A DNA stretch of 64,000 bases from Laetmonice hystrix (taxonomy: Eukaryota), in the NCBI GenBank assembly GCA_965235115.1, contig OZ249452.1, positions 13,640,001 to 13,704,000 of the forward strand. The letters run 5' to 3'. Below the pieces are notes generated by a model, which was given only the letters and a program-made list of their open reading frames with translations, had not been told where the DNA came from and made no database searches. Each line of letters opens with the position of its first letter. The stretch's first letter is position 1. Of this stretch, positions 17,141-52,200 are shown in pieces. The translations under genes and the position numbers were made by a program.

Positions 17141-18175
17141 TAGTAAAGTTCCGGGTTTGCCTATGTAAGCTCAGAAAGCAAGGAGCCCAGTCAAACCCCC
17201 ATGTCGTCATCCCAGTAAGGTCTGCATGTTTACCGTAAGTCCTTGTGCCGTCACGTCTGTAAGTACAGTACCGTCAGTGAGGAGGTAAGGCCGAGAGCCA
17301 ATCCACCCGGTCACAGCGGTTTACATAGTGTATACACCAGCAGTCGTACCCTATGTGTCATGGTGACATGGTAGCCATGGTGTTAACAGTCACACCATTA
17401 TGTCTGGAGTATTTTAACACAGTATGAGTTGTCCCCCTTGACTGTCCGTCCTCCCCCCTAGACAACTCCTACCTGTGGCCAGGCTCTGGTCAGTGGTCGG
17501 ACGCTGCACAGACCGGAAGTTGAGCGTTCCAAAGCTCCAGCTGCTGGCGGTTCTAGTGGTTGATGATGATGATGGTTGTGGTGAACGTACAGTGTCTTCC
17601 CGGTCTGCCCCAAACTTGATCTGACGGCCAACCCGTGCCGGGCCCCCGAGCGAACCGTGGAGGTGGCGGTGGTAGTCAGTCAGTGGCCTAGAAACATTTC
17701 CACCCCAGGCTGCGGTCTGGTGTGGACCGACAGGCCCACCACACACAAACGTGTTTGCACTCTCATTTTGTAATGCCTTCCAGTTGTGTCCAGCCGTGTT
17801 GGCAGTAATTACTTAGGTTTGAGGGGGTTTGGGTCCTGATTGGGTTTTCAAAAGTAATTTATTTGGTTTGTGAAAACTTGAGAAGCGACCCGAGTTGTCC
17901 TTCGGCGGTGAGTGTACGGCAAATACGGGTTGGAGGCGGGCGAGAACCGGCCCACATGCCGACCCCCGCCCACATGTCCGTTTCCTATGTTTGACATGTT
18001 TAACATGTCCCACTGGTACCAGCCAGATACCTGGGGTACCCAAACCTCAAGGGACCAAACTCCAATGACCAAACTAGTGATTTGGTCTCCTTTCACTGAC
18101 CAATTACCAAACAACCATCAGTGACACCAACCAATCGGAGGGTCGGAGCTCCTTGTCACAGGGCAATAAATTGAT

Positions 18176-18590
18176 ACAGGGCAAGAGGCAACAGCAAGAG
18201 GCTGTCAACGGCAAGAGGCTGTCACAGGGCAAGACGAAGTCAACGACAAGAGGCTGTCAGAGGGCAAGGCGAAGTCACGGGCAAGAGGCTGTCACAGGGC
18301 AAGGCGAAGTCAACGGCAAGAGGCTGTCACAGGGCAAGACGAAGTCAACGGCAAGCGGCTGTCACAGGGCAAGACGAAGTCAACGGCAAGAGGCTGTCAC
18401 AGGGCAAGACGAAGTCAACGACAAGAGGCTGTCACAGGGCAAGACGAAGTCACGGGCAAGAGGCTGTCACAGGGCAAGGCGAAGTCACGGGCAAGAGGCT
18501 GTCACAGGGCAAGGCGAAGTCAACGACAAGAGTCTGTCACAGGGCAAGGCGAAGTCAACGCCAAGAGGCTATCACGGGGCATGGGCAAGG
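18176..18590. repeat. 35-bp minisatellite (gcaagaggctgtcacagggcaagacgaagtcaacg), ~11 copies
   Basis: Direct tandem units; source of ORF 18153-18683. Confidence 0.95.
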
Positions 18591-19564
18591 GGAGCCAGAC
18601 ACTTGTCACACTCTGAGATCACATTCTGCCGACATGGCTGGCTCCGTACTAATCAAAGAAGACCGTCCCTAGGATATCACTAACCGCCTGCGGGAACTCT
18701 GCCTCAGACTTGTTTAGATACACCTGCATCTGGCTGCACACAGGCCGATTGTATCTACAAGTTTTTGTAATTAACAGACCTCAAGGTCACCTAGATGGCG
18801 AGATAACTTGTGTTGTATGTGCATGTCGTGACGCTATGCAGTTTCTACTTTTTGCGAACGTTAGTATCTATATTTGGTCTAGAAGTGGCCAAAAACTTGG
18901 AACCTTTCCACTCTTTGTGGACACGGATTCCAGTGATTTACGAGTAGATCTTGTATTATTTCGTTTTTCTTAAGTCAAGGTAGTTACACCTTTTTCTCCT
19001 TAAATTCCAGTCAGATATATTGCCAATCCTCTTTTAATGAGAAGTTGCTGCCCCTAAGGTATAAAAGTCAGTTATATGACCAATGGAAACATACCCCTGC
19101 TGGAGGCGATATAATGACCGTACGGCCGATATCTCTAATCAATGTCCTTGACGTTAATTCTCCTGATTTCCCCAAGGTCAAAGGCCGCTAACAACCCCTG
19201 TAACACTTCCCTAGATCACCTATAGTGTCCCTGGTGTCGACAGTATTGCATGATCTAACCATGTTGTGTCTTGGGGCCGGGGTCTGAGGGTGGCAATGGG
19301 GTGTGACGTGGGTGGGGGTGGGGGTGGGGTGTGACGTAGAGATGGGGGTGGGGGGTGGGGCCGTGGTATATCAATATATGACCATCTTGCCGTCAATCCA
19401 ACTTATCATTAACCGGTGGTGAAGTGATATGTCCCGATGTTTTTTACACGTCTACTCCACATTCCTTGACATTGATAGCAACATGAGAGATGCGATAACC
19501 GTTAACCTCGACACGGGCGTGTAATCTCTGGTCACACACCAGGAACAGGGGAGGGTAGACATAA

Positions 19565-27517: not shown

Positions 27518-28815
27518 CTGTGTAGTTTCATTGTTCTAACCACAGGACCTTTACACATATTAACCCTATAATCCCTAACACACTACTGCTGACTAGACAA
27601 GTATTATAAATGCAAACAAAGAAAATATTTTTTTTTAGAATTGACCTATAACATCCATCATAAACCGTTTTAGACACTCTATATTTCGGTCTATAGATGA
27701 TGCTTCCTTCGTGGGTTCTGTCATTCAGTATACGTACAGGCTTACCTTTGAGGGCAGATAACAATATGCCATTACATAGGGCAATGTGACGCAATGTAAC
27801 CCTACGATTTGTCCAGCACAATGAAGTTGTTTGCCCCCCTCCCCCGGGGGTGGGGGCACTGTCTCTGGACGCCCCTACGGATGGTGGCAACTTAATAATT
27901 GTTTACCATCTGTCAATGACATCCTCCCCCGCCGGTGTGAAAACCCCATTATTACGTAACAATGCATGTGTCCCACATGTCGGTGCAGACAGTGGTGGGT
28001 GGACATCGGGACAGATTACGGGTGAGGTGTCTAATTATAGACAGGACGGAGACAATGGGCTGGGATATGATCACAATAAATATATCTATGACACCTGTCT
28101 GGCTAAGGACGACATCAAAGTGTTTGGTATGCACACAGGTGGGCGAGTCAAGATACCTGGCAAACGGGCAGGCGCTTTGTTTGTTGTTGCTAGATTGTAG
28201 CCTATAGGCCTAACGTTAGCGGCAATACGTGGTCAGCAATATTATATGTACAATGTAGGCCTAGGCTATACATGTACTCAGTAGACATGCTGTATAACAG
28301 CTCAGAATCCGACTGAGCAGAAGATGAAGGCTTTGTTTAGCTTAGCAGGTGGTAAGTGCCAAGTGGTAGGTGGACTATGGTATAGATCTACATACGACTA
28401 GCCTCTAGGCCTAGAAAAGCTTAGAAATGTTCCACTACTGCCAACAACACCTGTGCGCCGTAGTTTCAGTCCTTGTAATGTTAGAGATTTTGTCAAGATG
28501 TTGGGTCTTATTTCTCCAAGGCTACCTTTAAGAACTGAGTGTGTCGGTGATGCGAGTACACGATCGTCTAAAGCGATGAATGACACCTACGTGTGACCGC
28601 GCCTTAACCGGGCCGCGCTGACTGCCGGCCGGCCGGACGGGCCGTCCGCGAGTCGGTGTGAACGTGGTGTCCTTCTCACAACCCGCCTGTGCCGTTAAAA
28701 AGTGACTCAGATAATTCTTAGAAGGACATCCTGGTTGAAATCCTAACCTTGACAACACAGAGATCGGAACTGTTGGGTCAGAAGACCGGCATGGAAAGCT
28801 GATCCTTAACTTACC

Positions 28816-29200
28816 TCAGACAGCGGCCGACTTGTACGTTAGCTCTGATCGATACAATGATGTAGTTGTTGGCGGGATGTTCAGAACGGTTCGTCTTTAG
28901 TAGGTCCCCGTGAAAGTAGGGCGATGCGCCGCTACAGCAGACTGGCTTCAGCGACCGGGGCACCGCCTGTGTTGTGGTATCCACGTGGCCTAGTTAGCAG
29001 TGCGCATGCGTAGTAGGTCAGCGAATGGCGGGCTTCTGGTGGTGGGCGGTCGTCTGCTATGTCGTTGTTGTAGCAGGCAGGTGGTGTGTTCTAAAGGTGA
29101 TCAGTCTGGGTGAATCATAGTTAGCGGGCAATCACTTGTCACCTGGCACGCATGCGTGACGTCTGTCAATTCTACTCCTGCACCAGTCGACCCCCAATCG
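28816..29200. promoter_or_regulatory. CpG-rich promoter-like region with NRF1-like sites and a minus-strand non-coding first exon
   Basis: tgcgcatgcg at ~29001, cacgcatgcgtg at ~29149, high CpG density, and a minus-strand donor ctgag|gtaagt at ~28815. Confidence 0.45.
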
Positions 29201-29653
29201 TCATAAATGTCAGCGTTCACTTAAACTAATTAGTTCAAGATGTTCGCGACAGCTAGAGTGAATCATAGATGGGCCAAGTTGCGATAGAATTGGGAGGAGG
29301 GGGGGGGGGGGGGGTTATAGACCTGAGCAAAAAGGAAGTCTCTGTTGGCGACGATCAAGAGTAAAGACTGGGGCCTAGGCCTAGAGAATCTAGGCCTATA
29401 TGAAGTGAATAATCTATATTTATTAGCTAGGTATCTATAGGCCTATAATAGCCCTAGACTACCTACATGCCTAAACCCTTGAATAGAAAATAAAAACTGA
29501 TCAAGGCTAGTGTTTATCAGTCTTTATTATTTATTATAGGCCTAGACCTAGGCCTCAATTTCTATTTGCCGCCCCCACCCCTTCACCCCCTTTGAAAATA
29601 ACATCCCATCTCTCCGCCAGAGAGCTTCCGCTTCCAGTTCAGCTGGCATCCTC

Positions 29654-32600
29654 GTCAAAGTGTTTCCGCTTCCCGCGTTCCCCGACGTGAACTTCGGCTG
29701 ACACCGCGCACCGCTGCCGGACGCTGACAGCGCCAGAACCGAACAGGTTGACGGACTGACAGACGCCGCTATAATTAGGCCACTCACGTACGTCACGACG
29801 GCAGTCGTTACGTCAGGCTGGTCGAAAAGGTACGACCCCAGCCCTACGATTCTGGCCAGACTTGGTGTGTTTACTTTCGGGCGGTGGTTCTCCTTATTTG
29901 ACCTGAGCTGGGAACATTGAGCCCGTACTCGTCCGATGGTGACACCTGGCGGAGAAGAAGGCAATTCGGGTATCTGCTAGATGGCGCCACTGTTCTCTGG
30001 GCTGGGCCTATGCCTCGTGGTTGTTTCAAAGAGTGTAGAAGGATTCTACACTCTTTGGTTGTCTGACCTGTGAACTATAGGCCTACATGTATAGGCCTAT
30101 ACAGCCTACTACACCGTCGAGGTACATGCCCAGGGCCAGAGGCTGGAGCGTATACTGTCGACCTGGGGGTTATATGGGTGGAGGGATGTGGGCTGGCTTC
30201 TTATGTTATCGGTATTATCGGTTGCTAAGCTAATATTTGTTGTCATATTTCAGAATAATGGCGGCCGTTCCGTCGTGGCTTCACACGCTCCTGGTGGACC
30301 AGTCCACTGACAGGTGAGGTGGGAGTAGGCCTATAGGATCATGTAAACATGTTCCAGGGCCCCAAGGTGTAGGCCTAGGGCCTTACACGTTCTGGGCCCC
30401 GATGTGTAGACCCAGGGAGCTCCACGTGCTGCCCCAACCATGGGCTTCTCACCAGCTTTAGCGGATTTGTCTTTAAATGTTTTTAAAAGACACCCTTTCT
30501 GATGGTGTTAATTGGCATGTAATTGGCATGTTATCAATATCATGTCGGTATACTAGGTGGAGGCTGGCCCCCATGCAGGTCCCCCTTGCCAGATTTTTCC
30601 ACCTTGACCTCAAACCCTTAAAACTCTGAATATGGCCCTGTTTGCCTTGTAACGTTCCGCCGTTGCCGGCAGGTACCACATCGAGTACCATGGCTTCCTG
30701 TCCAACCACCTGGCCCACGGTTGTATCGCCCTCTGGTGGCTGGGGGCCGAACAACACCGCGTCCAGCAGTATATCGACTGGTACGTCACCAAACTCGAGA
30801 AACCTGTCATAGAAACGGAAAAGGTATCGGACGTATCCAGTCTCCTCGGGAAACGAACCCATTACAACACACTTCGCTCTCACTATACTCACAAACTGAC
30901 TGATGATCACAAGGGAGACGTGGATTCTCTCATACGAAGTGAGTTTCCGAAGCTGTCCCTTGGCCTCAGCTGTTCAGCGTTCCATGGCCTGATCCACCTT
31001 GGCTACGGTTACTCAGTGCGTTCGGATCGTGTTGCCCTTGAGGGACTCGCCTACCTGAACCATTCCTACAGCCCCCTGGTCCTGTCGGAGGACAAACGCC
31101 CCCTAGCGGGATTCGGGAAAGGGCAGAAACCGATCCTGGACGTTCTCGCCGAGGTTAAAGCGGATGTTGAACTGCGAGAGTTCATGTCCGCGGAGAGCAA
31201 GCGACGATATCAAAAGGCAAGTCCTCTGTGAATGATTCTAGTCATGGAATTTTAACAGACTTGTCGATCTATGCCTATGGGTCTGTTCCAGTCCAGTGTA
31301 GGCCACCGTTAAGATACACAGTCATATGATAAAGTTAATTTCTTACAGTCATGATTTCGTGTTTCAGGGAAAGAGTGGTTCCTTCCAGTACTGCGTCGCT
31401 TCACTCTTCCAGTGCAGAGGGGACCGTCTCATTGACTACGTCAACTCTATTGAAATCCCGCTACTGTCGCAGGAACTATCCCCTGGAGATTATAAAGTGA
31501 GGGCCTATAATGGCCACCATGTGTTTTTACATGTTACAACCTTTTTTTTATCAACTTGTTCATTTCTCAAGCATGCTTAACCTAGTTCCTAGAGGCCTAT
31601 ATGCCTACTGGTACCTTAAAGCAAGATTTAAGATCCATGTAGGCCTATATTTTGTTTGACAAACATATTTGTAGGTTATGGAGCTTTGTGATTGGGTGAC
31701 CGACTGTGCCATCACGGTGTACGGAATGGCGTCACGGCGTAACGACTTCTTCCTAGTTCATGGCGTGACCGCTGCGTGGAGCCTCTGTAAAATCGCGGCC
31801 GTCCTAGCGGACGGTACCGAAACCAACCATCTCCACGTTCTAACTGCAGTGAGGGTGTTACTCGCCGGGCTATTGGCGACCTACATGGCCCAGGACTGCC
31901 CCCTGCTGGACGCTTCCAACCTCGACCTGGAGACGCCCACGTGGGAGGAGCTGATTGGTCAGGCAGTTTCAATTGATCGTGATGAGCACGTGTATAAATT
32001 GGTCCAAGTGTGCCGGCACCGCTCGCAGGAAAATCATGACGCCAAAATGGCAGAATTATATCGGAAGTGTGCTTACATTGCCGTGAATTATCCACTGGCT
32101 TTCTCTGGCTAATTTAAAATATCTGACCAATTCCCTGGCAGCGACCCCCCTCCTCTTCGCTCCATCCCAGTGTAACCAAAATCATAAAACATGCTTTTAA
32201 AAACTCGATAGCAAGCCGGAAACTTACAAGGGCTTTAGGCCTAATTATTATTCTTATAATACGTTGTATTTTCAAAGTGTCTATGGTAGGCCTAGTTATT
32301 ATAGTTTCCTCAAATTGAGAGGCTGAAATGAACTACGCATAGAGGGGCCTAGGCCTACTAGCAAGGGATCTAGTACTGTAGGCCCACAGAAAAGGAGTCG
32401 GCCTCTGACTTTATATACAAATACACACTTGAACTTCGAGAACCACTTGATGTCCTAGTCAGTTCACTACGACACAACGGTCCGATAAAACCCTTCTGAC
32501 AATGTTGATTGATGGTCTCGATACAATCATGTCTGTGTGGTAAACTTGTATCTTAGCGTAGCCTTGCCACTCTTCATTCTGAAGCGAAGAACACGCCTTA

Positions 32601-32915
32601 TAGGCCTAGCTGGCCTAAATAATGGATACAGTAGTTTGCATCATATTTTAGGTACAAGGGTTTCCACACAAGAGCATGGACCCCTTTTTAATGACCCACA
32701 TATATTTTCAGAATCACCTACATCTTCAGTAGCCTACATTATAGAATGATTTCATGACGTTTTTTTCGAGAATTTTAATAAAACTATGCAACCAGTTCCT
32801 CACTTGCTATAGATTAGCTGGTGTCTTTATAACAAGGCACTTCCCTTCCCTGAAGATAGGCCCAACGCCAGAGTAGCATTTTGTTTACTTTCTCCACCGC
32901 TGTGCCCGACAGATG
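29654..32915 (+). repeat. Tandem segmental duplication, copy 1
   Basis: Collinear with copy 2 from gtcaaagtg.ttccgcttcccgcg (29654 vs 33077) through the gene to gaacacgcctt (32599 vs 36717). Weaker homology of ~32625-32915 to ~39712-40130. Confidence 0.9.
30258..32112 (+). CDS. Questin oxidase-like / DUF4243 family oxidoreductase, paralog 1 (388 aa)
   Basis: Exons 30258-30313, 30673-31216 (GC donor aag|gcaagt), 31368-31496 and 31675-32112 join in frame. Family-type motifs: GFLSNHLAHGCIALWWLGA, AFHGLIHLGYG, EGLAY, NDFFLVHGVTAAWS, DEHVYKLV. Confidence 0.85.
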
Positions 32916-33543
32916 GGTGCACAGTCTTAACGCAAAAATAGCCCAGTGCGGTCTCTATTTACTACACTCTCTGATAACGCTATGCATGTGGACTGGACCT
33001 GATCACACCCGCGCAATAATATAACCCCGTGGTTTTCTTACGCGTGACGTCATGGCCATTCCCTGATTTGACCCCCGTCAAAGTGCTTCCGCTTCCCGCG
33101 TTCTCAGAAGTGAAGTTCGGCTGACACCGCGCCTCGCTGCCAGACGCTGACCGTTCGTAGGCGGCGCCAGAACCGAACGGGTTGACGGACTGACAGACGC
33201 CGTGACTGGAGCATTCACGTAGGCTACAGTCTTCACATCTGGCTGATCGAAAAAAACGCTGCCAGCGCTACGATTCTGGCCAGACTTGGTGTGTTTACAT
33301 AAGGGGCGGTGAAACCGATCTCCTTATTTGCCCTGAGCCAGCGGCAGTGAGACCGATGGTGACACCTGGCGGAGAAGAAGACAATTTGGGTATCTGCTAG
33401 ATGGCGCCACTGTTCTCTGGGCTTTGCCTCGTGGATGCCCTGTGAACTACACTGAACCGTCGAGTTACGTTTAAAAATATCGGTGTAAAGACCTAAATTT
33501 ACGTTGCTATATAAGCTAACATTTGTTGTCATATTTCAGGATA

Positions 33544-35728
33544 ATGGCGGCCGTTCCGTCGTGGCTTCACACGCTCCTGGTGGACCAGTCCACTGACAGG
33601 TGAGGTGGGGAGTAGGATCTTGTAAACATGTTCCAGGGCCCCAAGGTGTTGCCTTATAGGGCCTTACACGTTCCGGGCCCCAAGATGCAGACCCAGGGCC
33701 TATGCTCCACGTGCTGCCCCAACCAGCGGCTTCTCACCAGCTTCAGCTGACGTGTCTTTAAATATTTCTTATCCATAAGACACCCAGTCCTTTCTGGTGG
33801 TGTTAATCTGTATACATGTTTTTATGTCGGTAGGTTTATGTATTGTCAGTGTAGGTTTAAGCTGGACCCACCCCCACCCCCACCCCCCGTTTCCTTGCAA
33901 AATATTTCCACCTTGACCTCAAACCTTTAAACTCTGAATATGGCCCTGTTTGCCTTGTAACGTTCCGCCGTTGCCGGCAGGTACCACATCGAGTACCATG
34001 GCTTCCTGTCCAACCACCTGGCCCACGGTTGTATCGCCCTCTGGTGGCTGGGGGCCGAACAACACCGCGTCCAGCAGTTCATCGACTGGTACGTCACCAA
34101 ACTCGAGAAACCCGTTATAGAAACGGAAAAGGTGTCAGACGTATCCAGTCTCCTCGGGAAACGAACCCATTACAACACACTTCGCTCTCACTATACTCAC
34201 AAACTGACTGAAGATCATAAGGGAGATGTAGATTCTCTCATACGAAGTGAGTTTCCGAAGCTATCCCTTGGCCTCAGCTGTTCAGTGTTCCATGGCCTGA
34301 TCCACCTTGGCTACGGTTACTCAGTGCGTTCTGAACGTGTTATCCTTGAGGGACTCGCCTACCTGAACCATTCCTACAGCCCCCTGGTCCTGTCGGAGGA
34401 GAAACGCCCCCTAGCGGGATTCGGAAAAGGGAAGAAACCGATCCTGGACGTTCTCGCCGAGGTCAAAGCGGATGTTGAACTGCGAGAGTTCGCGTTTGCG
34501 GAGAGCAAGCGAGGACGTGAAAAGGCAAGTCAAAAGGCAATTTTAGAGACGCTTGTCGATCTATGGGTCTGTTCCAGTCCAATGTAGGCCCAATTTGGAC
34601 CGTTAAGATACACATTATGATAAAGTTAAGTTCTTACAGTCATGATTTCGTGTTTCAGGGAAAGAGCGGTCCCTTCCAGCAGTGCGTCGGTTCACTCTTC
34701 CAGTGCAGAGGGGACCGTCTCATTGACTACGTCAACTCTATTGAAATCCCGCTACTGTCGCCGGAAGTATCCCCAGGAGATTACAAAGTAAGGGCCTAAT
34801 GGCCACCGTGTGTTTTTACATGTTGAGATTACAAAGTAAGGGCCTAATGGCCACCGTGTGTTTTTACATGTTGAGATTACAAAGTAAGGGCCTAATGGCC
34901 ACCGTATGTTTTTACATGTTGAGATTACAAAGTAAGGGCCTAATGGCCACCATGTGTTTTTACTTTTGTGGCGGATCGAGGTGGGGGGGGGGGGGGGGGG
35001 GGCAGGGGGCACGTGCCGCCTTTAGCTTCCTGAATTAGGCCTATCTTAGGACATTATGAGAGGACATAATGAAGCAAATGGTTATAACTTAGGACACAGA
35101 AGTCTGAAACATACAAAAAGATCTTTGCCTTGGTTAATGCAAACAATCATGAATGTGCCCCCTCCCTGTAGTGAAATCCTGCATCCACCAGTGATGTAGG
35201 CCTATAGTATAGGCCTAGGCCTATGTTACAACCGGTTTCATCAACTTGTTGGTTTCTCAAGAATGCTTAACCTACCTATAGGTTCTGGAGCTTTGTGATT
35301 GGGTGACCGACTGTGCCATCACGGTGTACGGAATGGCGTCAACGCGTAACGACTTCGTACTAATTCACGGAGTGACCTCTGCGTGGAGCCTCTCTAAAAT
35401 CGCAGCCACCCTGGCGGACGGTACCGAAACCAACCATCTACACGTTCTAACTGCAGTGAGGGTGTTTCTCGCCGGGCTATTGGCGACCTATCTGGCCCTG
35501 GAGTGCCCCCTGCTGGACGATTCCAACCTTGACCTGGAGACGCCCACGTGGGAGGAGCTGATTGGTCAGGCAGTTTCAATTGATCGTGATGAGCACGTGT
35601 ACAAATTGGTCCAAGTGTGCCGGCACCGCTCGCAGGAAAATCATGACGCCAAAATGGCAGAATTATATCGGAAGTGTGCTTACATCGCCGTGACTTATCC
35701 ACTAGCTTTTTACTGGCTAAATATCTGA
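33544..35728 (+). CDS. Questin oxidase-like / DUF4243 family oxidoreductase, paralog 2 (391 aa)
   Basis: Exons 33544-33599, 33981-34524 (GC donor aag|gcaagt), 34659-34787 and 35282-35728, same phases as paralog 1 and no stops. Exon 1 is identical and exon 2 roughly 94-95% identical by eye. Confidence 0.85.
34777..34963 (+). repeat. 48-bp x4 tandem repeat that contains the exon-3 splice donor of paralog 2
   Basis: gagattacaaa|gtaagggcctaatggccaccgtgtgtttttacatgtt at 34777, 34825, 34873 and 34921; single copy in paralog 1. Confidence 0.97.
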
Positions 35729-36303: not shown

Positions 36304-38344
36304 TTAAAACTCGAGAGTAAGTCGGAAACCTACAGGGGCTTTAATTATTATTCTTTTATTATCAGAGTGTCTTAAAGTGTAACATTAGTTGGCTACGCAC
36401 ATACTAGCTAGGGATCTACTGTAGGGCCGCGGGACTAATAATGGCTGATGGTTCTTCAGTTCTGGGGAAACTACTTCTACTCTGGTAAAGAAAAACACAC
36501 AGATGGGATAGAAAAGGAGTATAGGCCTCTGGCTTTATATACAAATACACGCTTTGAGAACCACTTGATGTCCTAGTCAGTTCACTACAACACAACGGTC
36601 CGATAAAACCCTTCTGACAATGTTGATTGATGGTCTCGATACAATCATGTCTGTGTGGTAAACTTGTATCTTAGCGTAGCCTTGCCACTCTTCATTCTGA
36701 AGCGAAGAACACGCCTTGGTCACAAACAACTAAAGGGCTGAAAAGGACTTCATATAAGTCCAGAAAAAGAATAACTACTATTTTCGAGACTCCATAAATG
36801 AGATCTAATAATTTGAAATTTCATTAAAAAAATTCAAGACGCCTCATTCAATCAAGTTGTTTGATGCAAATCTTAACGTCAAACGCTTGTTATTGGTGTC
36901 TCCCTTAACATAGGGTCGATGGTTCACATTTCCGGTTGCTTTTGTCGCAGTCTGAAGGAACGTCGAAGGAGGACCGCGCCCTACCACAAAGAGCGGCATT
37001 AAATTATTGCAAATTTGTAGTAGCAATCCCAACAGTGATGTTCTTTTCCCGGAGTGTTCGTTCGAATCGCTTGTCTTGTTGTCTTGAATAATTACAAATT
37101 CATGACCTTGTACTACGTGCCTTGAGGCTGGCCGTTTGGAGCTGGTAAGTTTCCTTCACAGCTCCAAGTCAATAACTCCATTCTTTTGTAGAATCACTCG
37201 CACTGATATAGCTTAGAGTCGGTGTACATACGTAACTTTCCATGGAGAATACGACGAGGTTTCAAGTATCCTTGATGATAAAGCCTAATTTCACATATCT
37301 ACAAGTTTGTTGAAATATTTCAGAGGATTCATACAGAAGCTATAAGAGGCATCCTTTGACTTAGACTGTCTTAACGACCAAGGTCATGGTCAAGGTACAG
37401 CCGTCCACCTCTGCGCCTGCGCGGGTCCAGGAAGGGGCGGGGGAGTTAGAGGAGCACGTGTTCCTCTAGGCTAGTCACAAAATAATCTAACAGACAGACT
37501 CACACAGATTGCGCTATACCCAACCCGTTTACCCCACGCATGGAAACATTTGCGACCCCCCTCCCCCCACCTTTTTTCAACTCCCCCTCCTGGACCCACC
37601 CCTATTTCTGGACTGACATACGGTACAGGTACCTGCCCAAGTTGTAACATTTAGGATACTTCGAGAAAATTGTACACTGAGAAAAACATTAACTGCACAA
37701 GTCCATCCAAATTACTACATTAACATTTCCACGTAAAAACGGTCACATAATGACCAGTACTGGGACTAAGTACACATTCATTTGAAGATCTACAATGTCA
37801 TGTATTATGTACATGTCTACATCGTTTCCGTGATATCTGGAAGTACATTTTGTATTATCGAATAAATGTCAAGAGAGGCCAGAGCCACTTGTGACAGACT
37901 TTGTGCATTCGCGGCGACATTTAGATCTGCAGGATTGACATATATCTGATCAAGATATGTATCTAGGTCAAAGAGCAAGAATCATGACAACGTGGGTCAT
38001 ATTCGGGTTCCAGCGTTCCTGTTTTTTTTTTATACAAATACAGGATAAGTTCAAGCTGCACCCACACAAACATGAATGATATAACAACAGATATGGATTA
38101 GGACCCAGATTTTCTATACTTTATGATCATTGGTGATCATAGAGGACTGTTTTATATACAATAACAATAACAAAATGTAAACAGAATGATTGACTTACAA
38201 TGCTCAGTGAAAGCTAAAGTATTTCATCTAGTGCAACACTTAACTCCTGACTCAAGGAACTCAGCTTCACTTCTGTGTCTTCACTCAAAAAATTATATCT
38301 CTATATATGTAATAGTCTAACCAGAGATCGCCCAGTAAACTCAG

Positions 38345-40284: not shown

Positions 40285-43200
40285 CTAGATCTTCTCTATC
40301 TGGATCTGGTGGTAGCAAGCCTGAAGCAGAAACAGCAATGGTAATATTGACACAAGTGCCTCAATTTGGCAAAGATGTGACATAATCCCCGGCTTCAGGG
40401 AACAGATACTACCATTACAAGAGACGCAAGCGGCAAAATGGTAAGTGTCAAATTATCAATAAGGCAACATCTTGAGTAAACCTTCCCATTGCATCGAAAA
40501 TGCGATGACAATCCTGATGTTATTGAAGGATAATAACACTACATGTGTCTCCCTCCATTATAAATTATGTTATCATATATCTTACTCCTTGCCTCACCAT
40601 GACCCTGTGAACCTTGACTGACCTTGAGGGTGGTGAACATGATGCCAAGTTCACCGTGTTCCAGGTGCGGTTCCATGAGGTCGTCGATGAAGTGGATCTC
40701 GGCCCCCAGGTGGCGTATCCCCGCACGGACCACAACAAACAGGAACACTGGGAACAGTTCGTCCATACACCACTGGACTGGACCAATCCAGAGCTGGACC
40801 TCCTGAAGGTCAAACAAAGGTAATATTTACAAACCCCTAGTTCAAACAAAGGTCACGTGTATACACTCCTGAAGGTCAAGCAAATGTTACATGTACACTC
40901 CTGAAGGTCAAACAAAGGTTACATGTACACTCCCTTAGGTCGAACAGTACACGTCTACACCAGATTAAAGAGAAATCATGTCTCATTAAAGGTCACACAG
41001 TACACCAGGCAAGGTCGAAAGGGGCACATCTACAGCCCCTAAGGTCACCAGGGAAAGTCTATACTCCATCAAGGTCAAACCATACAGGGGTGTGATTCAC
41101 ATATCGTGGTCTGTAGAGATTGTAAGGAGTGGCGTGTTACCTTGTTGATAGCATTGAATGTTTCTTTGATCGTCCTCAGCTTCTCCTCCGGGCTGAATGA
41201 CGTACTGTAGAAACATCGTAAAGAATATGACGTCAGCAACAATGACAAACACGAGCTAATCAACCTGTCTGGACTCTCTATGGTCTGACTAGGATATTCT
41301 GAATATATGACATGTTGAACTGACCTGATATGTTGGAGCGTCTCGGTGGGGTCCCGGTAACACTTGTCCTTCACACTGGACAACTGCTGTAAACATAACA
41401 CACCACAACATCAATATCGCAGTGGTACCCGCAAATAAAGGACTTCGTGGGGTTTTTAAACTTTAAGTGTTAAAGTGACCAGCGGTAGAATACCCACTTG
41501 TTTGGACTTCAGCATGGATTCATCAATCAGCCAAAACTTTCTGTAAAGAGACATTCAAAATACAATCACTTATTGAACCACGGAGGCACCATGTGACGTC
41601 ACAAGCGTTAAGCTTTTTATAATAAACGACGGTTCAATTCTTCAAAACTTAAGATTCTGCTTAAGCTTATTTTTAAGCTTAATGTTTCTGATTGGCCAGT
41701 CTGCTGTAACCAACCAATCCTAAGCAAAATCTTAAGTGTTCCAAACCCCGGCCCTGGAGAGAGACAGGCCTGACTTACTGGTCCATTCCGAGAGCTGCCA
41801 TGAGACCCATGTCCGACTGTTTGTTCCACTGTGTCAGCCGTTTCCAGTATCGCTCGTCTTCCTTCTCATTGTAGAGGGCGTAGAGGGTGAACAGTGGGGG
41901 GTAGATCTTGGGTAGGAGGAGAGGGTAGAGTAGGCACCCCGCCGTCACAACCACCACCCTGTACAGATAAACGGTCACATAATGGTAAACCAAAAAATTA
42001 CTTTTTTTTTTCTTTTTTTTTTCAACTTAGCAATTTTAATAGATTTCATGTCTTTGAATTGCCGTTATGTGAATGTTATTGTCCCATTCTAGAGGTTGGA
42101 CATCATGGTCTCATATTTTGCGATATTTAAAAAAGGAGCCACGGTTTGACAAAGTATAGAACGATGGGGAGAGTCCTTACGTAGTGCTGTCCTCTGAGTC
42201 CTGGTCTGGGTTGTCGTCCTGCTGTGTGTCAATTGTGAAAACTTGATGATGGTCCTGGTTTGGTAGGCTGGGAAATAACAACCTGCGACAGGTAAAAAAC
42301 GCAAATATCAGCTGGGAAAAAAATGGGAATCACAACATGCGACAGGTAAAAACGGAAATATCATCCTGGAAAAACGGAATAACAAACTACGACAGGTAAA
42401 AAACGCAAATATCAGCTCGGAAATAATGGGAATAACAACCTGCGACAAGTGAAAAACACAAATATCAGCTCGGAAAAAACGGAAACAACAACCTACGGCA
42501 GGTAAAACTGCAAATATCAGCTCGGAAAAAAATACCCGGGATTGAGAAAAATAACCTGGTTTGGCTAAAAATAACCCGGCATGAGAAGTAACGGGCAATG
42601 AGATCGTACCTGACCAGTGGGTAGATTCTAGTAACATACGACTTGACCTCAGCGACAGCGTGGGTCAGTAATCGTGGATGGTGTGCACCGATTCCCATGT
42701 ATGTCGCTCGGTACACATCTACCAGTCCTTCCATCAACTTCCCCAGTGGGTGAAACGGAGTCTCGAACGCCTGCAATAAACCAAGTCAAAGTCTATGAGA
42801 ATTAGTCATTCTATTCAAATATCAATGAATTTACCTCAAATTGTGAAGAAAATTCACGGAAATACAGTAAACTTCACAGAATCGACTGGACTGACTCGCA
42901 TTAATCTTGCTTCCGTTTTCTCCTGTACAAACAAACCTTTGTCAGATAGTTTCGGACAATGTCGTAATCCTCAACTGACAACGTCCCCTGGGTTTGGCGA
43001 GGGATTTTCTCCAGCTGTTCCAGGATGTCACTGGCGACCTTTGACCTGATCACACAGCAAAACAAAGGAGGACAAATTTTAATTAGCAACAAAATACAGG
43101 TCAAATACGTTATTCCCGATGGTAACACGGTTTTTCAAAGCATACAAACAAAAACATCCATTACAGTTGAAACTCTACCTTTTACTGTCATCCTTGAGTG

Positions 43201-46200
43201 CCTTGCGACCGTTAGACACCATTACAGCCACAATCTCCCACGCCTTGGATGTCTCTACCACTCTGTCACCATGACAACCAAGGATGGTGTAGCAGTGGTG
43301 GAAGATGTCCTCCCACTTCCAGTCTGCAGCCACTGCCAGCTTCCCAAACGTCCTGGAAACGGCAAGGGAAACGTTGGTACATATCTTTTCTGAGGATTAC
43401 ATGGAAAATTGGAATGACTCCTCACAGGACAGCTTGCCCTGATAAAGTCCCTAACCTGACTGATGCAGTTATAATCTGACTGATTAAACCAAGGCTGAGT
43501 GACGTTCAAAAGTCCTAGCCCGAGTGGTTAAGTCCTAGGCTCAGTGGTTAAGTCCTAGCCTGAATGGTTGTGGCCTAGCCTGAATGGTTGTGGCCTAGCC
43601 TGAATGGTTAAATGTCCTAGTCTGAGTGGTTGTGTCCTAGCCTGAATGGTTATGTCCTAGTCTGAGTGGTTGTGTTCTAGCCTGAATGGTTGTGTCCTAG
43701 CCTGAATGGTTAAGTCCTAGCCCGAATGGTTAAGTCCTAGGCTGAATGGTTATGTCCTAGCCTGAGTGGTTATGTCCTAGCCCGAGTAGTTAAGTCCTAG
43801 CCTGAGTAAGAACAATGACCGTACGTTGGTACCAGGCCCAGTGAGTGAGTGAAACCCTTGCGTTCAGTCAGTGGTTCGGTTGTCTTGTAAAACATGCCAT
43901 CTTTGATCTTGATGCCCTCAGTGAATGACCCACTGAAGTGACCCTCAATGTAGTCACCATTCGGGAGGGTCAGCGTACCCTGGAAACATACCATCGCATA
44001 CAACGCAAATTACAACCTCAAATTCTTACTGAAACTTAATTCATCAGATTGGCTAATCTGCTTCAACCAGTAAATAATCAGAAGCGTTAGGTTTAAGCAA
44101 ACACTTAAGTTTTGAAAAATCGACATATCTACAAATTATAAAATCACTGACTTATCTTGGTCATGCTACCGTTATAACCCAGCCAGTGGGTAAAGCTCAT
44201 ATAGCATATAGCTCTGTATAGGAATTACCGAAATAACCAGGCCAACCTGAGCAGACAGACTGGAGGCCTGAGTACACTCACCTTGCCGTGAAGGTTAGGG
44301 CCTCCGGAGAAATCACCCTCAAAATACGAATTGTCCTCCGTCATCAGAAGACCAAACCCCTGAAACGGAACATCAATCCTCAGTTACTGTGGGAGTATCC
44401 AGACGGACACAGAGAGGATACTAATCCCTGGGACACATGAGGATACAGAGGAGGTTCTTCGTATCCCTGGATAAACTGAATGTTACTTACGGACATTTTG
44501 TCGTGGGTAAAACTTCCCTCGAAGTACATGCAGTCGAGTGTCACGATGATACCGTTACCATGGCGCGTATCGTCCTGCCACATCCCCATGTACTTCTGAC
44601 CTATCGGAGCAGACGACACAGGAACCGAGTTATGGGGGCGGGGGTTGGATTAGGGGGCAGAGATCTAATTACTTTTAGGTCTGTGCACTGGGAGGAGAGG
44701 TTAGCAGATCCGCACATAACCAACAAACGTTTTCAGTGCCATCTAGCGGATATAAATAGAACTACAGCCAGTTATATTTGGAAACACTGATCCATATTTT
44801 CACAGGCTAAGAACGTGGTAAGAACTTAGGGCTGCTCGCCTCAGCATTCCAAGCTTAAAACTACTCAAGAACTTGAAAAAGAATGAAAATCCTGCACAGC
44901 CTACCCTTTGAAATATCATCCAGAACGCCGTAGCCACACTTCTTATCGGTGACCCACTCTCCGATATAGATAGAAGCAATCGGGGGTGAACCAGACGTGA
45001 TCTTCCCACGCTTCATCACCCCATGGCCATGCTTCCTACCCTCCTTAAAGTACCCCTCATACACGTCTCCATTGGCATACCTGGATTGTCACGTGATCAC
45101 CAATTATAGTCACAAAATCAACTAAAACAACTTTATCTTTATTCTATGCAACCAGGAGCCTGTATCCTTAGTAACAGCAGGTCTGGTTAGCTTTGCCTCG
45201 TTACATCTGGTTATCTTTATCTTAGAAACATTTGAGTATCTTTAGATAACTGAGCTGCCTTGATCTGTGTGACTCACTTGACTGTTCCAAGGCCGTGCAT
45301 TTTCCCACCCTTCCAATGTCCGTCATAAACCTCCGTCTCACTTGGGTCCTTTGGGGTTGTGTAGATACCGTGGCTAAAACAATGCCGGGGGGCAACACAA
45401 ATTTATCTTTCACAAATCTCTGATATTGTACGCGGGGAAGAGTTACTTTATCTTTCTCATGTAAATCTACGTGAACCTGTGATGTTACGTACCCGTGCTG
45501 AAGTCCTTGTTTAAACTTTCCAACATAACGTCGACCGTCTGGCCAGGTTAATTCACCACTGAAACATGAGAGGTTCAGTTACAATCCTCTTTCAAAGATT
45601 CTAAACATGACTGACTGACACAACGTATAATACAGAAAACATTAAAATATGACATAGTCATGATTGACCCAGAAAGTATACACTTTAGCCATGATTGTTC
45701 CAGCTCTCCCAAATGTTGTTGGTCCTGGGCTGGTGGTCGAAAGGCCTAGACTCAAAAATTATACATAAAAAAAGTTCTGGACACAAAATGTATCGAGAGG
45801 GCAGGTTACATCAAGATGTTACTTACTGTCCGTGCATCTTGCCGGCCAGCCACATCCCGACATACTTGGCTTCCTTGAGGCTGGCGTTCTTGTAGAAGAC
45901 ATGTTTAGCTTGGCGTGCGAGCGGTGGAGTAAGTCTAGCTCCATCCACACGGGGGCGCAGCTGTTGTTTCTGGTCAGATAATGCCTTGTCGATGGCCTGG
46001 TTAAAGGCCCACAGCCACTCGGCCTGTATGTAGTTATTGTAATATTTATTTCATGATCCTGTCAAGAGTTCCGGTCATTTAGAGGATTATCTACCTGATC
46101 TATTAATTTAATCTTTGCTCAATTTTAATGATATATGTCATCACTAGAAATGATGAAGCTCACCTTGTCTGAGGCAGATGGTGCTGTGAGTATTAGGACT

Positions 46201-49200
46201 TCTTCCGGCATCGTCAATGTGATGGCGTTTCTGAATGGCAGCATACTCATTCTAATCTGTGTGTCATTTTGTTGGACTTGGTTTACGGGTTCTAGAAGTG
46301 TTGTCCAAATATTCTCCACTCTCAGCAAAAATTTGATCATTTACAAATTATTTTTATGTCAACCTAGAAATACAGACTGCATTTGACTTACTTAAGTTGG
46401 CTGGAGTCTGAAACTGCTTCGACCCAGATAGTTGGAAGGGGGAAGGTTTGGTGCATGGAATACTGAAATACAAGGTAGTGGTAAGGGGTCGATTGAAGGG
46501 TAGAATATGGGCATGCAAGGCCTGTTTTACAGGTATGCGCTGAGTGGTTTTAAATTGTTCTAATGGGCCACAGTAACATTCAAAACACAGTGACCCGTGA
46601 GCATGTCCCAATGGGCCATAAAGGCATAATGAAACAGACAACACTGTGAGGGATAAACTTGTCCAAAAATGCCACAGCAAAACTGTAAAAAACTAAGCTG
46701 TGAACTTGTACCAATGGGCCACCGTAAAATAAAAAAATATGTGAAATGTGAATTGTGCTAATGACCCACAGTAAATTCAAGCATTTTGTGAGATGTGAAC
46801 TAATTCAAATGGGCCAAGGCCGATTCAGACCACTGCAATGGGTGAGTCTAGCAATTTGGCTACAGTAAAGCTGAATTTATTGTGAGCTGTGAATTTATCC
46901 TAACGGGCCAAAACAGAGCATGTACCGGTACTTACTGGAGGAAAGCCGCCCTGTGGGTGAGCCAGACAAGAAAACAAAACGGAGCTGGATCTTCGGTGGT
47001 ATTAATGCACGATATTTACACAAGCTTTGATTGCAGGTCTGTAAAATTTACCTATCCATGAATCTATCTGTCTATGAATCCTCACCTGTCCGTGAACGAA
47101 GACGTCTGAGAACAGGATCAGCCAGTGCATTGAGAATCGTCCACTTGACGGAATGCTGATCGGGTTACCTTTGCTTTCTCTCACCAGGCGGCGCCCTGGA
47201 TGCCGCAGAGCCTCCTAGTGACAGAAATGAGAACCTTTGGAACGCTGGACAGATATGCTTTCCGTAAGTAACTACATTTGTTATATACACAAATAGTACG
47301 CTGTAAATGAGGATATTCAATAGGAAAATTCCGCATTCTACAAATTGATTATAGAATGTAAGTACATACGGCAAACTTTGGTGGACAGGCCTCCCAGAAC
47401 TTGCGTGTGTTTTCAGCCATGTTGTGCTCGGTGCTGGCCGACTGTTTGAGTGAATCCCACAGCTGGCTGAGCTGACTCAGGTGTCCGTGCTCCGCAGTAT
47501 ACTGTCATAGAACAACAACATTTACTGGTACATTTTACTGTCATAGAACAACAACATTTACTGGTACATTTTATTGTCATAGAACAACACTTACTGGTAC
47601 ATTTTACTGTCGTAGAACAACACTTACTGTTACATTTTACTGTCATAGAACAACACTTTTGTTTTATTGGTGGGGGAGCGGGATTCCCCAAATAACCGGG
47701 CATGCTTTTCTCAAAGTATGACAGCTACAATACAGTTGCAGACTAATGGAAGACCTAGCTAGAGAAATATGGACTGACAGACTTCAGCCATGTCCCTGTA
47801 CAATGTACCTTAGGAGTGGCTGCCCACTAGGGGCCCGGTAACTTACCGCCGGGTACCGCAGCGCCACCTTGCTGATATGTTTGGAGTAGTCCTTGAGTCG
47901 GTGAAGTGGAACCTGCATCAGACGCCGTAACGTGACGGCCATGTTGGAACGGTCTACTTTTGTCTCCTCTAAAACTTCAATGAAATGCTCCCGGACTTTG
48001 TCAAAAAAGGTGCTGCAAAACAGAGCGACGGTGATCATTTGTATCAGATGTTGACTCTTTATCAAACAAATCAAAAGATGTCAGATTTATCTATTTTCTG
48101 ATACCAACCAATACTGGTGACGTCTATTACTCTATTTCCAGTGTTTTTTTTCACTTCGACGAAAAGAACATTGATCAAAAACATAAAGCAAACTGAATTC
48201 TTTTTAACAGTATTTTGATGCCAAAGTGTCCTATGAAATCAAATAACCTACAAATCTCCGCTGTGCGACCTCGGCTATGAAGTAACTACAGAATCTTGAC
48301 AGTGTAGATTGTTCTACACAATAACTACAGACTCGCCATTATGAAATTTACTTCTGTAGACTTTTACAGATATATAAGCTGTCTCACAAAGGTGTAACTT
48401 ATTCTATAGGAATCTGGGTGACGGAATGGTAGGAGGAGGGATTTGTGAGAAAGACAGAACCTGATTACAACTTTGAAGTGATTGACCTACATGTATACGG
48501 TGAATGTCACTGTGACGTGACTAACGGCAACTGTGCTAAACAAAGGGTGGGATCGCTTGGATGATTCCTGGTGATTAATTAATTAATTAAATCATTGGGA
48601 AAACCCTGTGATCTCCTTAAAATACGCTTTATTTAGCACCACAAGGTTCATCTGCCAATGATCCCGTCAGAGCCTGCAATAAGGCTTTTATGCCTGAACC
48701 ACTTGAGGTGTCAAGTCACGGTGGGCTAGATAATGATCCCTTACACTAGGTCTGGCAGTGTGGAAAGAGTCCTTGGTGTAACCTTTGTTGAAATGTGTGG
48801 ATAGATTTCTTGGTGTAACCTTTGTTGAAATGTGTGGAAAGATTCCTTGGTGTAACCTTTGTTGAAATGTTTGGAAAGATTCCTTGGTGTAACCTTTGTT
48901 GAAATGTGTGGAAAGATTCCTTGGTGTAACCTTTGTTGAAATGTGTGGATAGATTTCTTGGTGTAACCTTTGTTGAAATGTGTGGAAAGATTCCTTGGTG
49001 TAACCTTTGTTGAAATGTGTGGAAAGATTCCTTGGTGTAACCTTTGTTGAAATGTGTGGAAAGATTCCTTGGTGTAACCTTTGTTGAAATGTGTGGAAAG
49101 ATTCCTTGGTGTAACCTTTGTTTAAATGTGTGGAAAGATTCCTTGGTGTAACCTTTGAGGAAAAGTTTGGAAAGCTTCCTTATATTTAACCTTCTCTGGC

Positions 49201-52200
49201 ACGCATCCCAAGCCTAAACCGAGACAATCATAATGTGGCTTAACCGAAGAGTTTCCTGTTTGTTGGGGAGGTGGCTTAGTCTTAACAAAGGTGTAGCGAG
49301 GTCTGGCTGTTTGAAAAGCTTCTTTAGCATGACCAGATGAAGGCACTTAATTTCATCTAGTTATAAGGTTGGAGGGAGGGGATTCCTTGCCTATAATTTG
49401 ACCTTGAACCGTGACCTAGATACCTACTCTGCCATCTCTAATTCATCTGAGTGATTCTTGTTTTTTCCAAACCTTGTCACACGAACAGATGACGATTCAT
49501 TGCTATAAACAAAACACACTCAAAATTCGATTTTTTTCATCAACTTTCCCATTTATATACATTTCCTTGGGAAGATCACGTGTCATTTTTCGCTGTTTTT
49601 TTTTGGCTACATTCCGAACCATATTAACCAACCTTCTGTACTATTTTTCAAATCAAAATTAAAACACTGCTGAATTGATATCATGCAAGGAAGAATATTC
49701 ATTACATTAGGCAAATAATAATGTCTTAAAATACTGAGAGGCCTCGTAACTTCGCCTGTAAAATGACATTTACCACCAGGATGTTGAATCTACAATCACC
49801 TAATTTAACCAAAATTGCTGTTCGAAAACTATGAATATTATATCACCCAAGCCGACTGAATGTCATAAAATATACATGTGTTAAATAATATCGTCCACGT
49901 ATAAATACAGCACCAGTAGCATCAAATACAGTGTACGTGTGTCGACACCTAGTGGGAGTTTTGTGAACTAGGGGAGAGCAAGCAAAAGCAGCACCACCGA
50001 CAAATGTGTTAAAAATACACTCGTTAATCGTCCGAAATTACAGTGGTTTCTTTCTGGTCTGAACAAATATTTAATATTTAAAAGGACAAAATGATCTTAG
50101 AGAGTATAATTTTATAGTTATGAAGTTGGTAGCGCTGCTTTTTGGAACAAAAAGAAATATTTACTTTTTTGATCGCCTGGGAGAAGACAAAAATATTAAA
50201 GCCGGAGTTAACATACAAGGTTCAAGGTCACAAGAAAACTGAAGGTCACTTTGAACCCCTACTGACTGGGCATCACGATGGGTGAACAATCACAGTTATA
50301 CTTCAATATATTAATTTTCTGGAACATGATTCTGCGATATTTATTTAAAGACATTTTTTTTTTAATTATCTCTTTTCCTACTTATCTAATATCATGTCCA
50401 GTGTTGTTAAAAACTATTGGCGAATCCCCAGATGGGACAATAAGCTGTCGTGACCCATGCAACGCACTGAGAAGCGAGGCGTACTGACCTGAACCCAGTT
50501 GGTTAAACTCACCTTGCAGTTTTAGTAATGTACTCAAACCCTCCAAGGGCAAGCGTGTCGCCAAAGTATCGCGAGAAGTTCTGGAAGACAGATATATGCT
50601 CCTCCGAGTGTGCCAACATTGTCAAACTCTCAAGTTCTCGTGACCCTTGGATGACCTCTGCCAGTTCTATTGTCGTTCGTGCCACCTGGAAACAATTCTC
50701 AATTAACAAATCTGAACCTCGCTCATAAAAACGAGAAAACTGACAATTATGTGATCATTCTATGACCAGTCTGACAGACAGCATGGACACTGACCGTATT
50801 GAGGAGAGACGTGAAGGAATCGACCATTTGTTTGAAGTTGATGTCATACATGTTCCCCTCTTGTTTCTTGTAATGCTCTGTGTGAGACAGAAACGAAAAC
50901 TGATTACACCACAATACAGAATTTACTGCACGAGTATTCATTCTGGGCCTCTTGTACACAGACATGGAACCCCCCTCTGCCACACCCAGTATCAAGGATT
51001 TTCTATATTGGACATATTTATATTTAAATATTATGATATTGAAGACATACCTGAGTTGATGAATGGGTTGAGGATGTTTGTAGCGATGATGTCTAGCCTA
51101 CAATGATATAACCTTTCAGTGGCTGCAAACTCGTGAAGTGTTGCAACATTGCCATTTGTGTTTCGGTCTGTGAGGCAGGCACACAGATCACCACCGGCGA
51201 CGACTTGTTTGATCCAGCCACACTGAAACAAAATGATATACAGATTGGTAACTCTACTGAAACAAAAAAACATGAAGATTTGTAACTCTGCTGAAACAAA
51301 ACGGCATTTCCCTAATCCTAATCCCTACTTCATAACCCCATCTTACTCCAAGCATGACTTGCTAATCCCACCTTGCTCCAAGTATGACAAGCGATGCTCA
51401 CCTTTTTCAGGGATGCCAGCCTCATCATGTGCAATGTTTTCTGTGTCTCGCGACCTTCGACTTCTTCACCACTGAAATCAAACCATTCACTCATCACGTC
51501 TCTTTTTATCAGTAATAACGCTTCAGAAAGTCTGTCCAATCAACAAACATGTCATATCATGGTCGTGAAGATATCAGTCTTTTGCTAAAGTCAATAGATC
51601 CCAAATAATGACAGGATCTGGGAACCAGACCCTAGATTATGATATCACCTGGGAACCAGACCCCAGATTATGATATCACCTGGGAACCAGACCCTAGATT
51701 ATGATATCACCTGGGAACCAGACCCTAGATTATGATATCACCTGGGAACCAGACCCTAGATTATGATATCACCTGGGAACCAGACCCTAGATTATGATAT
51801 CACCTGGGAACCAGACCCTAGATTATGATATCATCTGGGAACCAAACCCTAGATTATGATATCACCTGGGAACCAGACCCTAGATTATGATATCACCTGG
51901 GAACCAGACCCCAGATTATGATATCACCTCGGAACCAGACCCCAGATTATGATATCACCTGGGAACCAGACCCTAGATTATGATATCACCTGGAAACCAG
52001 ATCCCAGATTATGATATCACCTGGGAACCAGACCCTAGATTATGATATCACCTGGGAACCAGACCTTAGATTATGATATCACCTGGGAACCAGACCCCAG
52101 ATTATGATATCACCTGGGAACCAGACCCTAGATTATGATATCACCTGGGAACCAGACCCCAGATTATGATATCACCTGGGAACCAGACCCTAGATTATGA

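Follow-up and report, generated by a model that had tools for sequence, protein, structure and literature searches.

A tandem pair of predicted DUF4243 (questin-oxidase-like) oxygenase genes in Laetmonice hystrix

What are two neighbouring relatives of the fungal questin oxidases doing in the genome of an animal, and are both still able to work as enzymes? The question is raised by a stretch of 64,000 nucleotides from Laetmonice hystrix (GenBank assembly GCA_965235115.1, contig OZ249452.1, positions 13,640,001 to 13,704,000 of the forward strand). The whole stretch is referred to below as the window, and positions are counted from its first letter. An original prediction, made from the letters alone, described here two complete genes of the DUF4243 family and saw in them an unusual animal enzyme for the turnover of anthraquinone-type compounds. 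The analysis reviewed below gives a soberer answer: by analogy with the fungal members of solved structure, the two genes probably form an intact tandem pair encoding iron-dependent DUF4243 oxygenases of a distinct subfamily, and this assignment is made with good confidence.

Gene models and family membership

The two genes lie side by side on the forward strand, the first (g1) at 30258–32112 and the second (g2) at 33544–35728, each running from ATG to stop and each predicted to be complete with four coding exons. The outer limits coincide exactly with those originally proposed, position 30258 being the start of an ATG and 35728 the end of a stop codon. Joining of the predicted exons yields open frames of 388 amino acids for g1 and 391 amino acids for g2, with no stop and no frameshift, in agreement with the earlier description of two complete four-exon paralogues as long as the exons are understood to be predicted coding exons. 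A tblastn search with g1 finds these two copies and no other in the 64-kb window.

In g1, coding exon 1 (30258–30313, 56 nt) ends in phase 2 at a GT donor, coding exon 2 (30673–31216) has 544 nt, coding exon 3 (31368–31496, 129 nt, phase 0 to phase 0) encodes a variable linker with a conserved F-Q, and coding exon 4 (31675–32112) has 438 nt including the stop. Their counterparts in g2 are located at 33544–33599, 33981–34524, 34659–34787 and 35282–35728; the last of these has 447 nt including the stop and makes the C-terminus three residues longer than that of g1. Introns 1 and 3 are of the GT-AG type in both genes. Intron 2 (31217–31367 in g1, 34525–34658 in g2) is of the GC-AG type, with the donor AAG/gcaagt in both paralogues, whereas the orthologous intron 2 of a related gene in ENA assembly ERZ25767047 (loci L005/L006) has a GT donor. 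Since an AG acceptor stands 4 nt before each ATG, an untranslated exon upstream of each predicted four-coding-exon model is likely on the basis of the sequence.

Over their whole length, the spliced proteins align collinearly with homologues whose genes have no introns. Junction 1 falls inside a conserved motif, and junctions 2 and 3 fall inside a variable linker where indels are mostly small, amounting to at most 0–7 residues near these two junctions; the placement of the junctions and the small size of the indels support the splice model. In addition, exon 1 has the same length and phase as in the relative from ERZ25767047, and exon 3 measures 129 nt in g1, g2 and the relative alike and aligns to homologues over both of its junctions.

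Membership in PF14027 (Questin_oxidase, formerly DUF4243), which had been proposed from the letters, was examined with the profile hidden Markov model, each exon being searched separately against a curated gathering score of 27 bits. Exon 2 scores 63 bits in g1 and 64.8 bits in g2 over profile positions 2–177 of 340, and the corresponding values for exon 4 are 46.5 and 43.4 bits over positions 225–339 of 340, so that the assignment is confirmed by matches of 43.4–64.8 bits. Exon 3 alone, which encodes the variable middle of 43 amino acids, gives no Pfam match, and a search of NCBIfam returned nothing relevant. An exhaustive phmmer search with exon 2 retrieved 531 cluster representatives at E ≤ 0.001, the best full-length ones being 44–49% identical over the exon. 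The window proteins themselves are missing from the protein collections, in which the best cluster representative has 47–53% identity.

Metal site and predicted chemistry

Single exons used in phmmer give marginal matches to PDB sequences (E = 0.2 to PaD). For comparison with PDB sequences and for mapping of the ligands, a profile of 40 clade members (A1) was therefore employed; it matches PaD (8z4q) over the full length with E = 2e-19 and with the ligand residues aligned, and it also matches AflY (8yxs) and BTG13. In PaD the iron is bound by H63, H166, H317, H394, the carboxylated lysine K397 and a water molecule (PMC11371914), and in BTG13 the carboxylation of K377 depends on H58 and T299 (PMC11951088). 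Mapping via 8z4q and 7y3w places the four Fe-binding histidines of g1 at H31 (motif NHLAH), H123 (FHGLIH), H272 (HGVT) and H348 (DEHVYK), with the same columns occupied in g2. The ligand lysine, K351 in g1, follows three residues after the fourth histidine within DEHVYK in both genes. Both also retain the second-sphere residues equivalent to BTG13 H58 and T299, which are H34 (in NHLAH) and T275 (in HGVT) of g1. Exon 2 thus carries H31, H34 and H123, and exon 4 carries H272, T275, H348 and K351. In an alignment of 157 family sequences, the five ligand columns are H or K in 149–156 sequences, and g1 and g2 possess all five.

The fold was approached through a homologue from Capitella (P0003, 41% identical to g1), whose AlphaFold model has a predicted local distance difference test (pLDDT) score of 94.4 and a predicted template modelling (pTM) score of 0.93. 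Compared with the PDB, this model finds PaD, BTG13 and the AflY-like enzyme only, with template modelling (TM) scores of 0.70–0.75, the next match having E = 0.3. By this modelled proxy, the clade appears to have the all-helical BTG13/PaD fold.

These data suggest the following mechanism. Both copies would give intact DUF4243 enzymes, presumably located in the cytosol. On the all-helical scaffold, K351 would be carboxylated with the help of H34 and T275, and one non-haem iron, Fe(II), would be held by H31, H123, H272, H348 and the carboxy-lysine. The bound iron would activate O2, and a para-diphenol-type (hydroquinone-type) aromatic ring would be cleaved at a C–C bond adjacent to a hydroxyl. 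Hydroquinone ring cleavage as the specific reaction is somewhat favoured by the analogy, with less assurance than the oxygenase assignment as such.

Three sets of characterised relatives show how far the analogy extends. PaD, a hydroquinone dioxygenase of penicillic-acid biosynthesis (PDB 8Z4Q, PMC11371914), is the best solved match to the clade profile: its ligand set of four histidines, lysine and water aligns residue for residue, and the all-helical fold is shared with a TM score of 0.70. It differs in being only about 18% identical, in its length of 473 amino acids and in being encoded in a fungal cluster beside a polyketide synthase (PKS). Two parts of PaD have no counterpart in the clade alignment: motif 1 (K56–F60) represents five residues extra relative to the clade profile and is absent from the animal clade, and motif 3 (T444–D448) lies beyond PaD residue 407, at which the clade alignment stops, the animal proteins continuing for about 25 further residues. 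Both motifs belong to a lid that selects monocyclic substrates. BTG13 and GedK, which cleave the ring of anthraquinone and questin hydroquinones (PDB 7Y3W), have the same fold (TM 0.75). For H55, H296, H374 and K377 of BTG13 and for the second-sphere H58 and T299, the clade has directly aligned counterparts, and the fourth histidine is in an aligned conserved motif. These enzymes are 16–17% identical and work with a partner reductase in fungal polyketide clusters, whereas no such partners are seen among the flanking frames scanned. The AflY/HypA-type oxidoreductase (PDB 8YXS) and the DUF4243 domain at the C-terminus of MinC share the Pfam family and the fold, but another type of reaction has been proposed for them, and they come from fungal and actinobacterial secondary-metabolite settings. 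In MinC the DUF4243 domain is fused to a HAD phosphatase domain, a setting different from that of the window proteins.

Several points weigh against the reading of the pair as iron-dependent ring-cleaving oxygenases. Sequence identity to the enzymes characterised so far is very low, which leaves room for a different chemistry. The clade has neither the five-residue motif 1 insertion of PaD nor the C-terminal region bearing motif 3, and its proteins are 50–85 amino acids shorter than the fungal enzymes. The structural model is that of the Capitella proxy and not of a window protein, and the literature searched contains nothing on animal DUF4243 members. Finally, splicing of g2 could suffer from the fourfold repetition of its exon 3 donor.

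Two other reactions have to be considered next to hydroquinone cleavage. AflY and MinC have been described as Baeyer–Villiger-type oxidases with a DUF4243 domain (PMC6908994), and the match of the clade profile to AflY (E = 2.8e-11) is consistent with enzymes that keep the fold and the metal site and perform a Baeyer–Villiger-like reaction or an oxidative rearrangement, as proposed for AflY and for the C-domain of MinC. We regard this as unlikely, since the members having both a solved structure and a defined reaction are hydroquinone ring-cleaving dioxygenases with the same ligand set, which is conserved in g1 and g2. Less probable still is the idea, central to the original prediction, that the pair encodes true questin or anthraquinone ring-openers acting on animal or dietary anthraquinone pigments. 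It agrees with the family name, with the activity of GedK and BTG13 towards tricyclic hydroquinones (PMC11371914) and with the lack of the PaD motif 1 insertion in the clade, as in BTG13 and GedK. However, the proxy model is 15–18% identical to BTG13 and PaD, and the known chemistry of the family already spans monocyclic hydroquinones (PaD) and non-quinone chemistry (MinC). Moreover, a Pfam scan of about 40 flanking reading frames, which covered long frames only and could miss short exons, revealed neither a PKS nor a partner reductase, and the bacterial members of the subfamily stand alone beside unrelated genes. The link to anthraquinones rests on the family name and was not sustained. Ring cleavage of a hydroquinone-type substrate is kept as the favoured, if provisional, assignment.

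Subfamily, origin and duplication

By their sequence, the window proteins belong to a distinct unnamed subfamily that has IEYxGFLSNH as its hallmark N-terminal motif; the motifs NSTxKY.IEY.GFLSNH, NDFFLLHGVT and DEHxYKLVQV are common to g1, g2 and the animal members. A blastp search with spliced g1 aligns residues 1 to about 386 with about 45 proteins of 376–446 amino acids at 36–42% identity, above the 35% set as the lower limit for membership. Named full-length relatives with 37–42% identity come from annelids (Capitella, Owenia, Dimorphilus, Ridgeia), bivalves (Argopecten, Ylistrum, Mercenaria, Mya, Dreissena), the nemertean Lineus and the copepod transcriptomes of Calanus and Neocalanus, and all of the named animal ones are annotated as uncharacterised. 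The genes are therefore not peculiar to this animal, full-length homologues having already been deposited from these four groups. Typical examples are Capitella teleta CAPTEDRAFT_214401 (ELT92798.1), Lineus longissimus XP_064623862.1 and Argopecten irradians XP_069132384.1: proteins of this kind have 378–431 amino acids, align end to end and possess the same ligand motifs. They are often encoded in tandem, Capitella and Argopecten each having a pair and a eukaryote represented in ENA having arrays of two to four. More distant members, at about 25–30% identity, occur in the ciliate Tiarina, the foraminifer Bolivina and the chytrid Geranomyces.

A prokaryote scan with a deeper cluster (A4) detected stand-alone genes in aquatic bacteria, among them Psychrobacter, Xenococcus, Calothrix, Parvularcula and Rubrivivax. 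These bacterial IEYxGFLSNH members have both the N-terminal motif and the H-x-x-K motif, and they match g1 almost from end to end (tblastn E = 1e-17 to 1e-23), but they are 24–26% identical to it, vary from 320 to 490 amino acids and have no conserved operon context. Inspection of the bacterial gene neighbourhoods brought no consistent neighbours and no functional clue, and the motifs of the animal clade have no prokaryotic carrier among 185,579 species representatives. Two neighbourhoods can be recorded individually. In Xenococcus sp. PCC 7305 (L022 1854–4284), the subfamily member divergently adjoins a short-chain dehydrogenase/reductase gene, an arrangement not seen in Psychrobacter; this pairing of an oxygenase with a reductase recalls GedK. 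In Argopecten irradians (CM084271.1, L003 1–6783), a cytochrome P450 gene has a tandem pair of DUF4243 genes immediately downstream of it, a possible hint that bivalves possess a small neighbourhood of metabolic genes.

The exon structure is informative with regard to origin. The relative in ERZ25767047 has exons of 56, 562, 129 and 408 nt, is 47.5% identical to the window gene at the protein level and shares the positions and phases of all three introns, which means that the introns predate the split of the two animals. The other animal genes are different: Capitella and Lineus have no intron in the coding sequence, the Argopecten copy has a single N-terminal intron that matches no intron of the window genes, and the ENA eukaryote with tandem arrays of two and four copies has uninterrupted coding as well, although at several ENA loci the intron status was judged from gene lengths alone. 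The assembly ERZ25767047 also contains a 61%-identical copy of an exon of the Alsin-like gene of the window. A homologue (58% identical) of the open reading frame (ORF) at 9848–10996 is found there on the same contig as the DUF4243 gene of the relative, about 87 kb away and in the same order and orientation. No synteny was found between the immediate flanks in the window and those at L004–L006. Taken at the level of sequence, these comparisons indicate that the gene is vertically inherited within this animal lineage.

Distance trees with bootstrap, the deep nodes of which are weakly supported, unite g1 and g2 at 100%, join them to the relative at 74–84% and recover the bivalve groups. No bacterium is nested among the animals; the chytrid and the ciliate are located between bacteria and animals, and a foraminifer transcriptome sequence falls inside the animal cluster.

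The original prediction allowed for an ancient horizontal transfer followed by domestication. Part of this holds: the introns are spliceosomal, of the GT-AG and GC-AG types, and the neighbours are ordinary animal genes, namely an Alsin-like gene and collagen-like exons. A recent transfer is excluded by the introns common to the relative. An ancient one, in which an invertebrate ancestor obtained the gene from a microbe and introns were gained later in the lineage of Laetmonice, is not demonstrated, the bacterial relatives being only 24–26% identical and the deep tree weak, and it seems doubtful to us. It would account for the intronless coding sequences of Capitella and Lineus and for the intronless gene body in Argopecten and in the tandem arrays of the ENA eukaryote. 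It would also fit the restriction of the named animal matches to spiralians and copepods, no vertebrate or insect entry having turned up, and the existence of same-subfamily members in Psychrobacter, cyanobacteria, Rubrivivax and other bacteria. On the other hand, even the best bacterial match to g1 stays within that low identity, the animal-clade motifs are absent from the prokaryotic representatives surveyed, and no bacterium enters the animal cluster. The placement of the chytrid and the ciliate fits an old eukaryotic ancestry with losses equally well. The foraminifer sequence within the animal cluster and the weak deep bootstrap qualify the tree argument. Microbial contamination or a very recent transfer has a practically negligible probability: each gene has three spliceosomal introns at positions common to the relative, both genes are flanked on either side by animal genes in an uninterrupted sequence of 64 kb, their guanine–cytosine (GC) content is that of the flanks, and their nearest relatives are animal proteins.

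Self-BLAST delimits a duplicated unit composed of an upstream block, the gene and a 3′ flank. The upstream block of g1 (29650–30009, forward strand), a putative promoter and/or untranslated first exon, matches that of g2 (33073–33429, forward strand) at 78% overall with long near-identical stretches. At the downstream end of the unit, the 3′ flank at 32388–32599 has a 94% match at 36510–36717, both on the forward strand. This pattern would correspond to a unit of about 3–3.6 kb, comprising the promoter block, the four-coding-exon gene and the 3′ flank, that was duplicated locally in tandem. The pair had also been described as being amplified. The tandem duplication is indeed there, but amplification amounts to a single local event with a synonymous divergence (dS) of about 0.10. 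As judged from the sequences, the duplication took place after the separation from the relative in ERZ25767047.

The coding sequences of g1 and g2 are 94.5% identical in nucleotides and 92% in amino acids, with dS of 0.105, a nonsynonymous divergence (dN) of 0.042 and dN/dS of 0.40. Exons 1–3 are 93–100% identical (100%, 94.9% and 93%, respectively) and free of indels; exon 4 is 93.8% identical and has one 9-nt difference in length at the C-terminus. The introns are 82–89% identical with many indels. Exons conserved without indels, diverged introns and dN/dS of 0.40 make up the pattern expected for two constrained genes, and both copies look functional and under purifying selection in this sequence comparison.

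It is decidedly unlikely, though worth weighing, that one copy, most probably g2, is on the way to becoming a pseudogene or to acquiring a new function, as opposed to being a fully redundant enzyme. In g2 a 48-bp tandem repeat of 3.9 copies (34777–34963, forward strand) takes in the last part of exon 3 and the donor site behind it, so that the donor is present four times; the first donor alone keeps the frame open, and the later copies read into a stop. Intron 3 has expanded to 494 nt in g2 vs. 178 nt in g1. Furthermore, 11 of the 30 amino acid differences between the copies fall in residues 189–245 (p = 0.003, the region having been picked after seeing the data), which align with lid motif 2 of PaD. 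Set against this, the frame of g2 is intact with all ligand residues present, in addition to the dN/dS value and the indel-free exons 1–3 already mentioned. No other part of the family varies as much as residues 189–245, and for this reason little weight is placed on the clustered changes. Two functional, constrained copies remain the better description of the pair.

Some repeated sequences occur in and around the pair. After the 48-bp repeat, intron 3 of g2 contains a run of about 24 G at 34980–35003. The palindromic octamer TAGGCCTA has 24 sites in the window vs. 0.68 expected. Nineteen of them are located in 28205–35223, concentrated in the introns of the DUF4243 pair, in the spacers and just upstream, and other sites are at 6507, 13823, 16543 and 25066. 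The octamer could represent a dispersed short element or else a motif specific to the lineage. The sequence CTTCCGCTTCC is present on the forward strand at 29625, 33086 and 35963, three sites vs. 0.01 expected, two of which are in the duplicated upstream blocks. The third, 235 nt past the stop of g2, could be a promoter-like element of a following gene or the remnant of a third unit.

Overall, the pair is genuine, yet it represents a known kind of enzyme in a fairly ordinary form, and what is new is one more lineage of a widespread, unstudied invertebrate clade. To our knowledge, no animal member of the family of iron dioxygenases with four histidines and a carboxy-lysine has been studied. The sequences point to a conserved, apparently catalytically competent branch that is widespread in marine invertebrates and often tandemly duplicated. 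If a substrate is found, aromatic ring cleavage, which is otherwise credited to microbes, would be added to animal metabolism, and this would bear on the handling of quinone pigments, algal phenolics and pollutants by invertebrates. A more far-reaching scenario may be outlined, although we think it improbable as a whole: the clade would serve an animal-encoded small-molecule step that opens the ring of an endogenous or dietary quinol or polyketide, the gene having entered or been retained in intronless form in spiralians and copepods and having expanded repeatedly in tandem, and the pair described here would represent an early stage of substrate divergence between paralogues, with amino acid changes concentrated in the putative lid region. 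The value of the window itself is modest; it contributes an extra lineage, evidence that conserved introns are possible in this gene and a clean pair of paralogues for comparison.

Genomic setting and minor observations

An Alsin (ALS2)-like gene occupies 41078–57978 on the reverse strand and is recognised by four collinear Pfam matches in the domain order of Alsin: an RCC1-like domain (RLD, 55549–57435), followed by DH_Alsin (47787–48080), MORN (44383–44649) and VPS9 (41078–41410), the last three being individually below the cut-off. Its upstream exon at 57751–57978 is conserved with L004. Towards the other end of the window, two short G-X-Y collagen-type exons in one open frame (1370–1951, forward strand) come from a collagen-like gene. 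The Alsin-like and collagen-like neighbours, together with a GC content that is even across the window, argue that the window is animal DNA and that the two DUF4243 genes are not contaminants. Apart from collagen and Alsin-like hits, the Pfam scan of the flanking frames gave weak matches, and the Rfam and tRNA scans of the window were empty. Close relatives of the neighbouring genes, at 58–74% identity, are found in ENA long-read assemblies.

The remaining observations concern individual reading frames. The ORF at 9848–10996 (reverse strand) is a frame of 383 amino acids with repeated KPEA...RN.G modules and no Pfam match. Its homologues among ENA and Logan proteins reach 74% identity, the named ones being uncharacterised mollusc proteins only, at 33–38%; in a third assembly, a homologue is on the same 788-kb contig as DUF4243 copies. 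At 48691–49179 (reverse strand), in the intron region of the Alsin-like gene, sub-threshold Pfam matches, including a Gag p24 C-terminal-like one (20.7 bits vs. a cut-off of 25.9), may mark a retroelement remnant. The segments 8712–9521 and 18081–18680 are open in several frames on both strands and have a weak CCCH zinc-finger match only, a pattern that points to repetitive DNA or a biased composition and not to genes.

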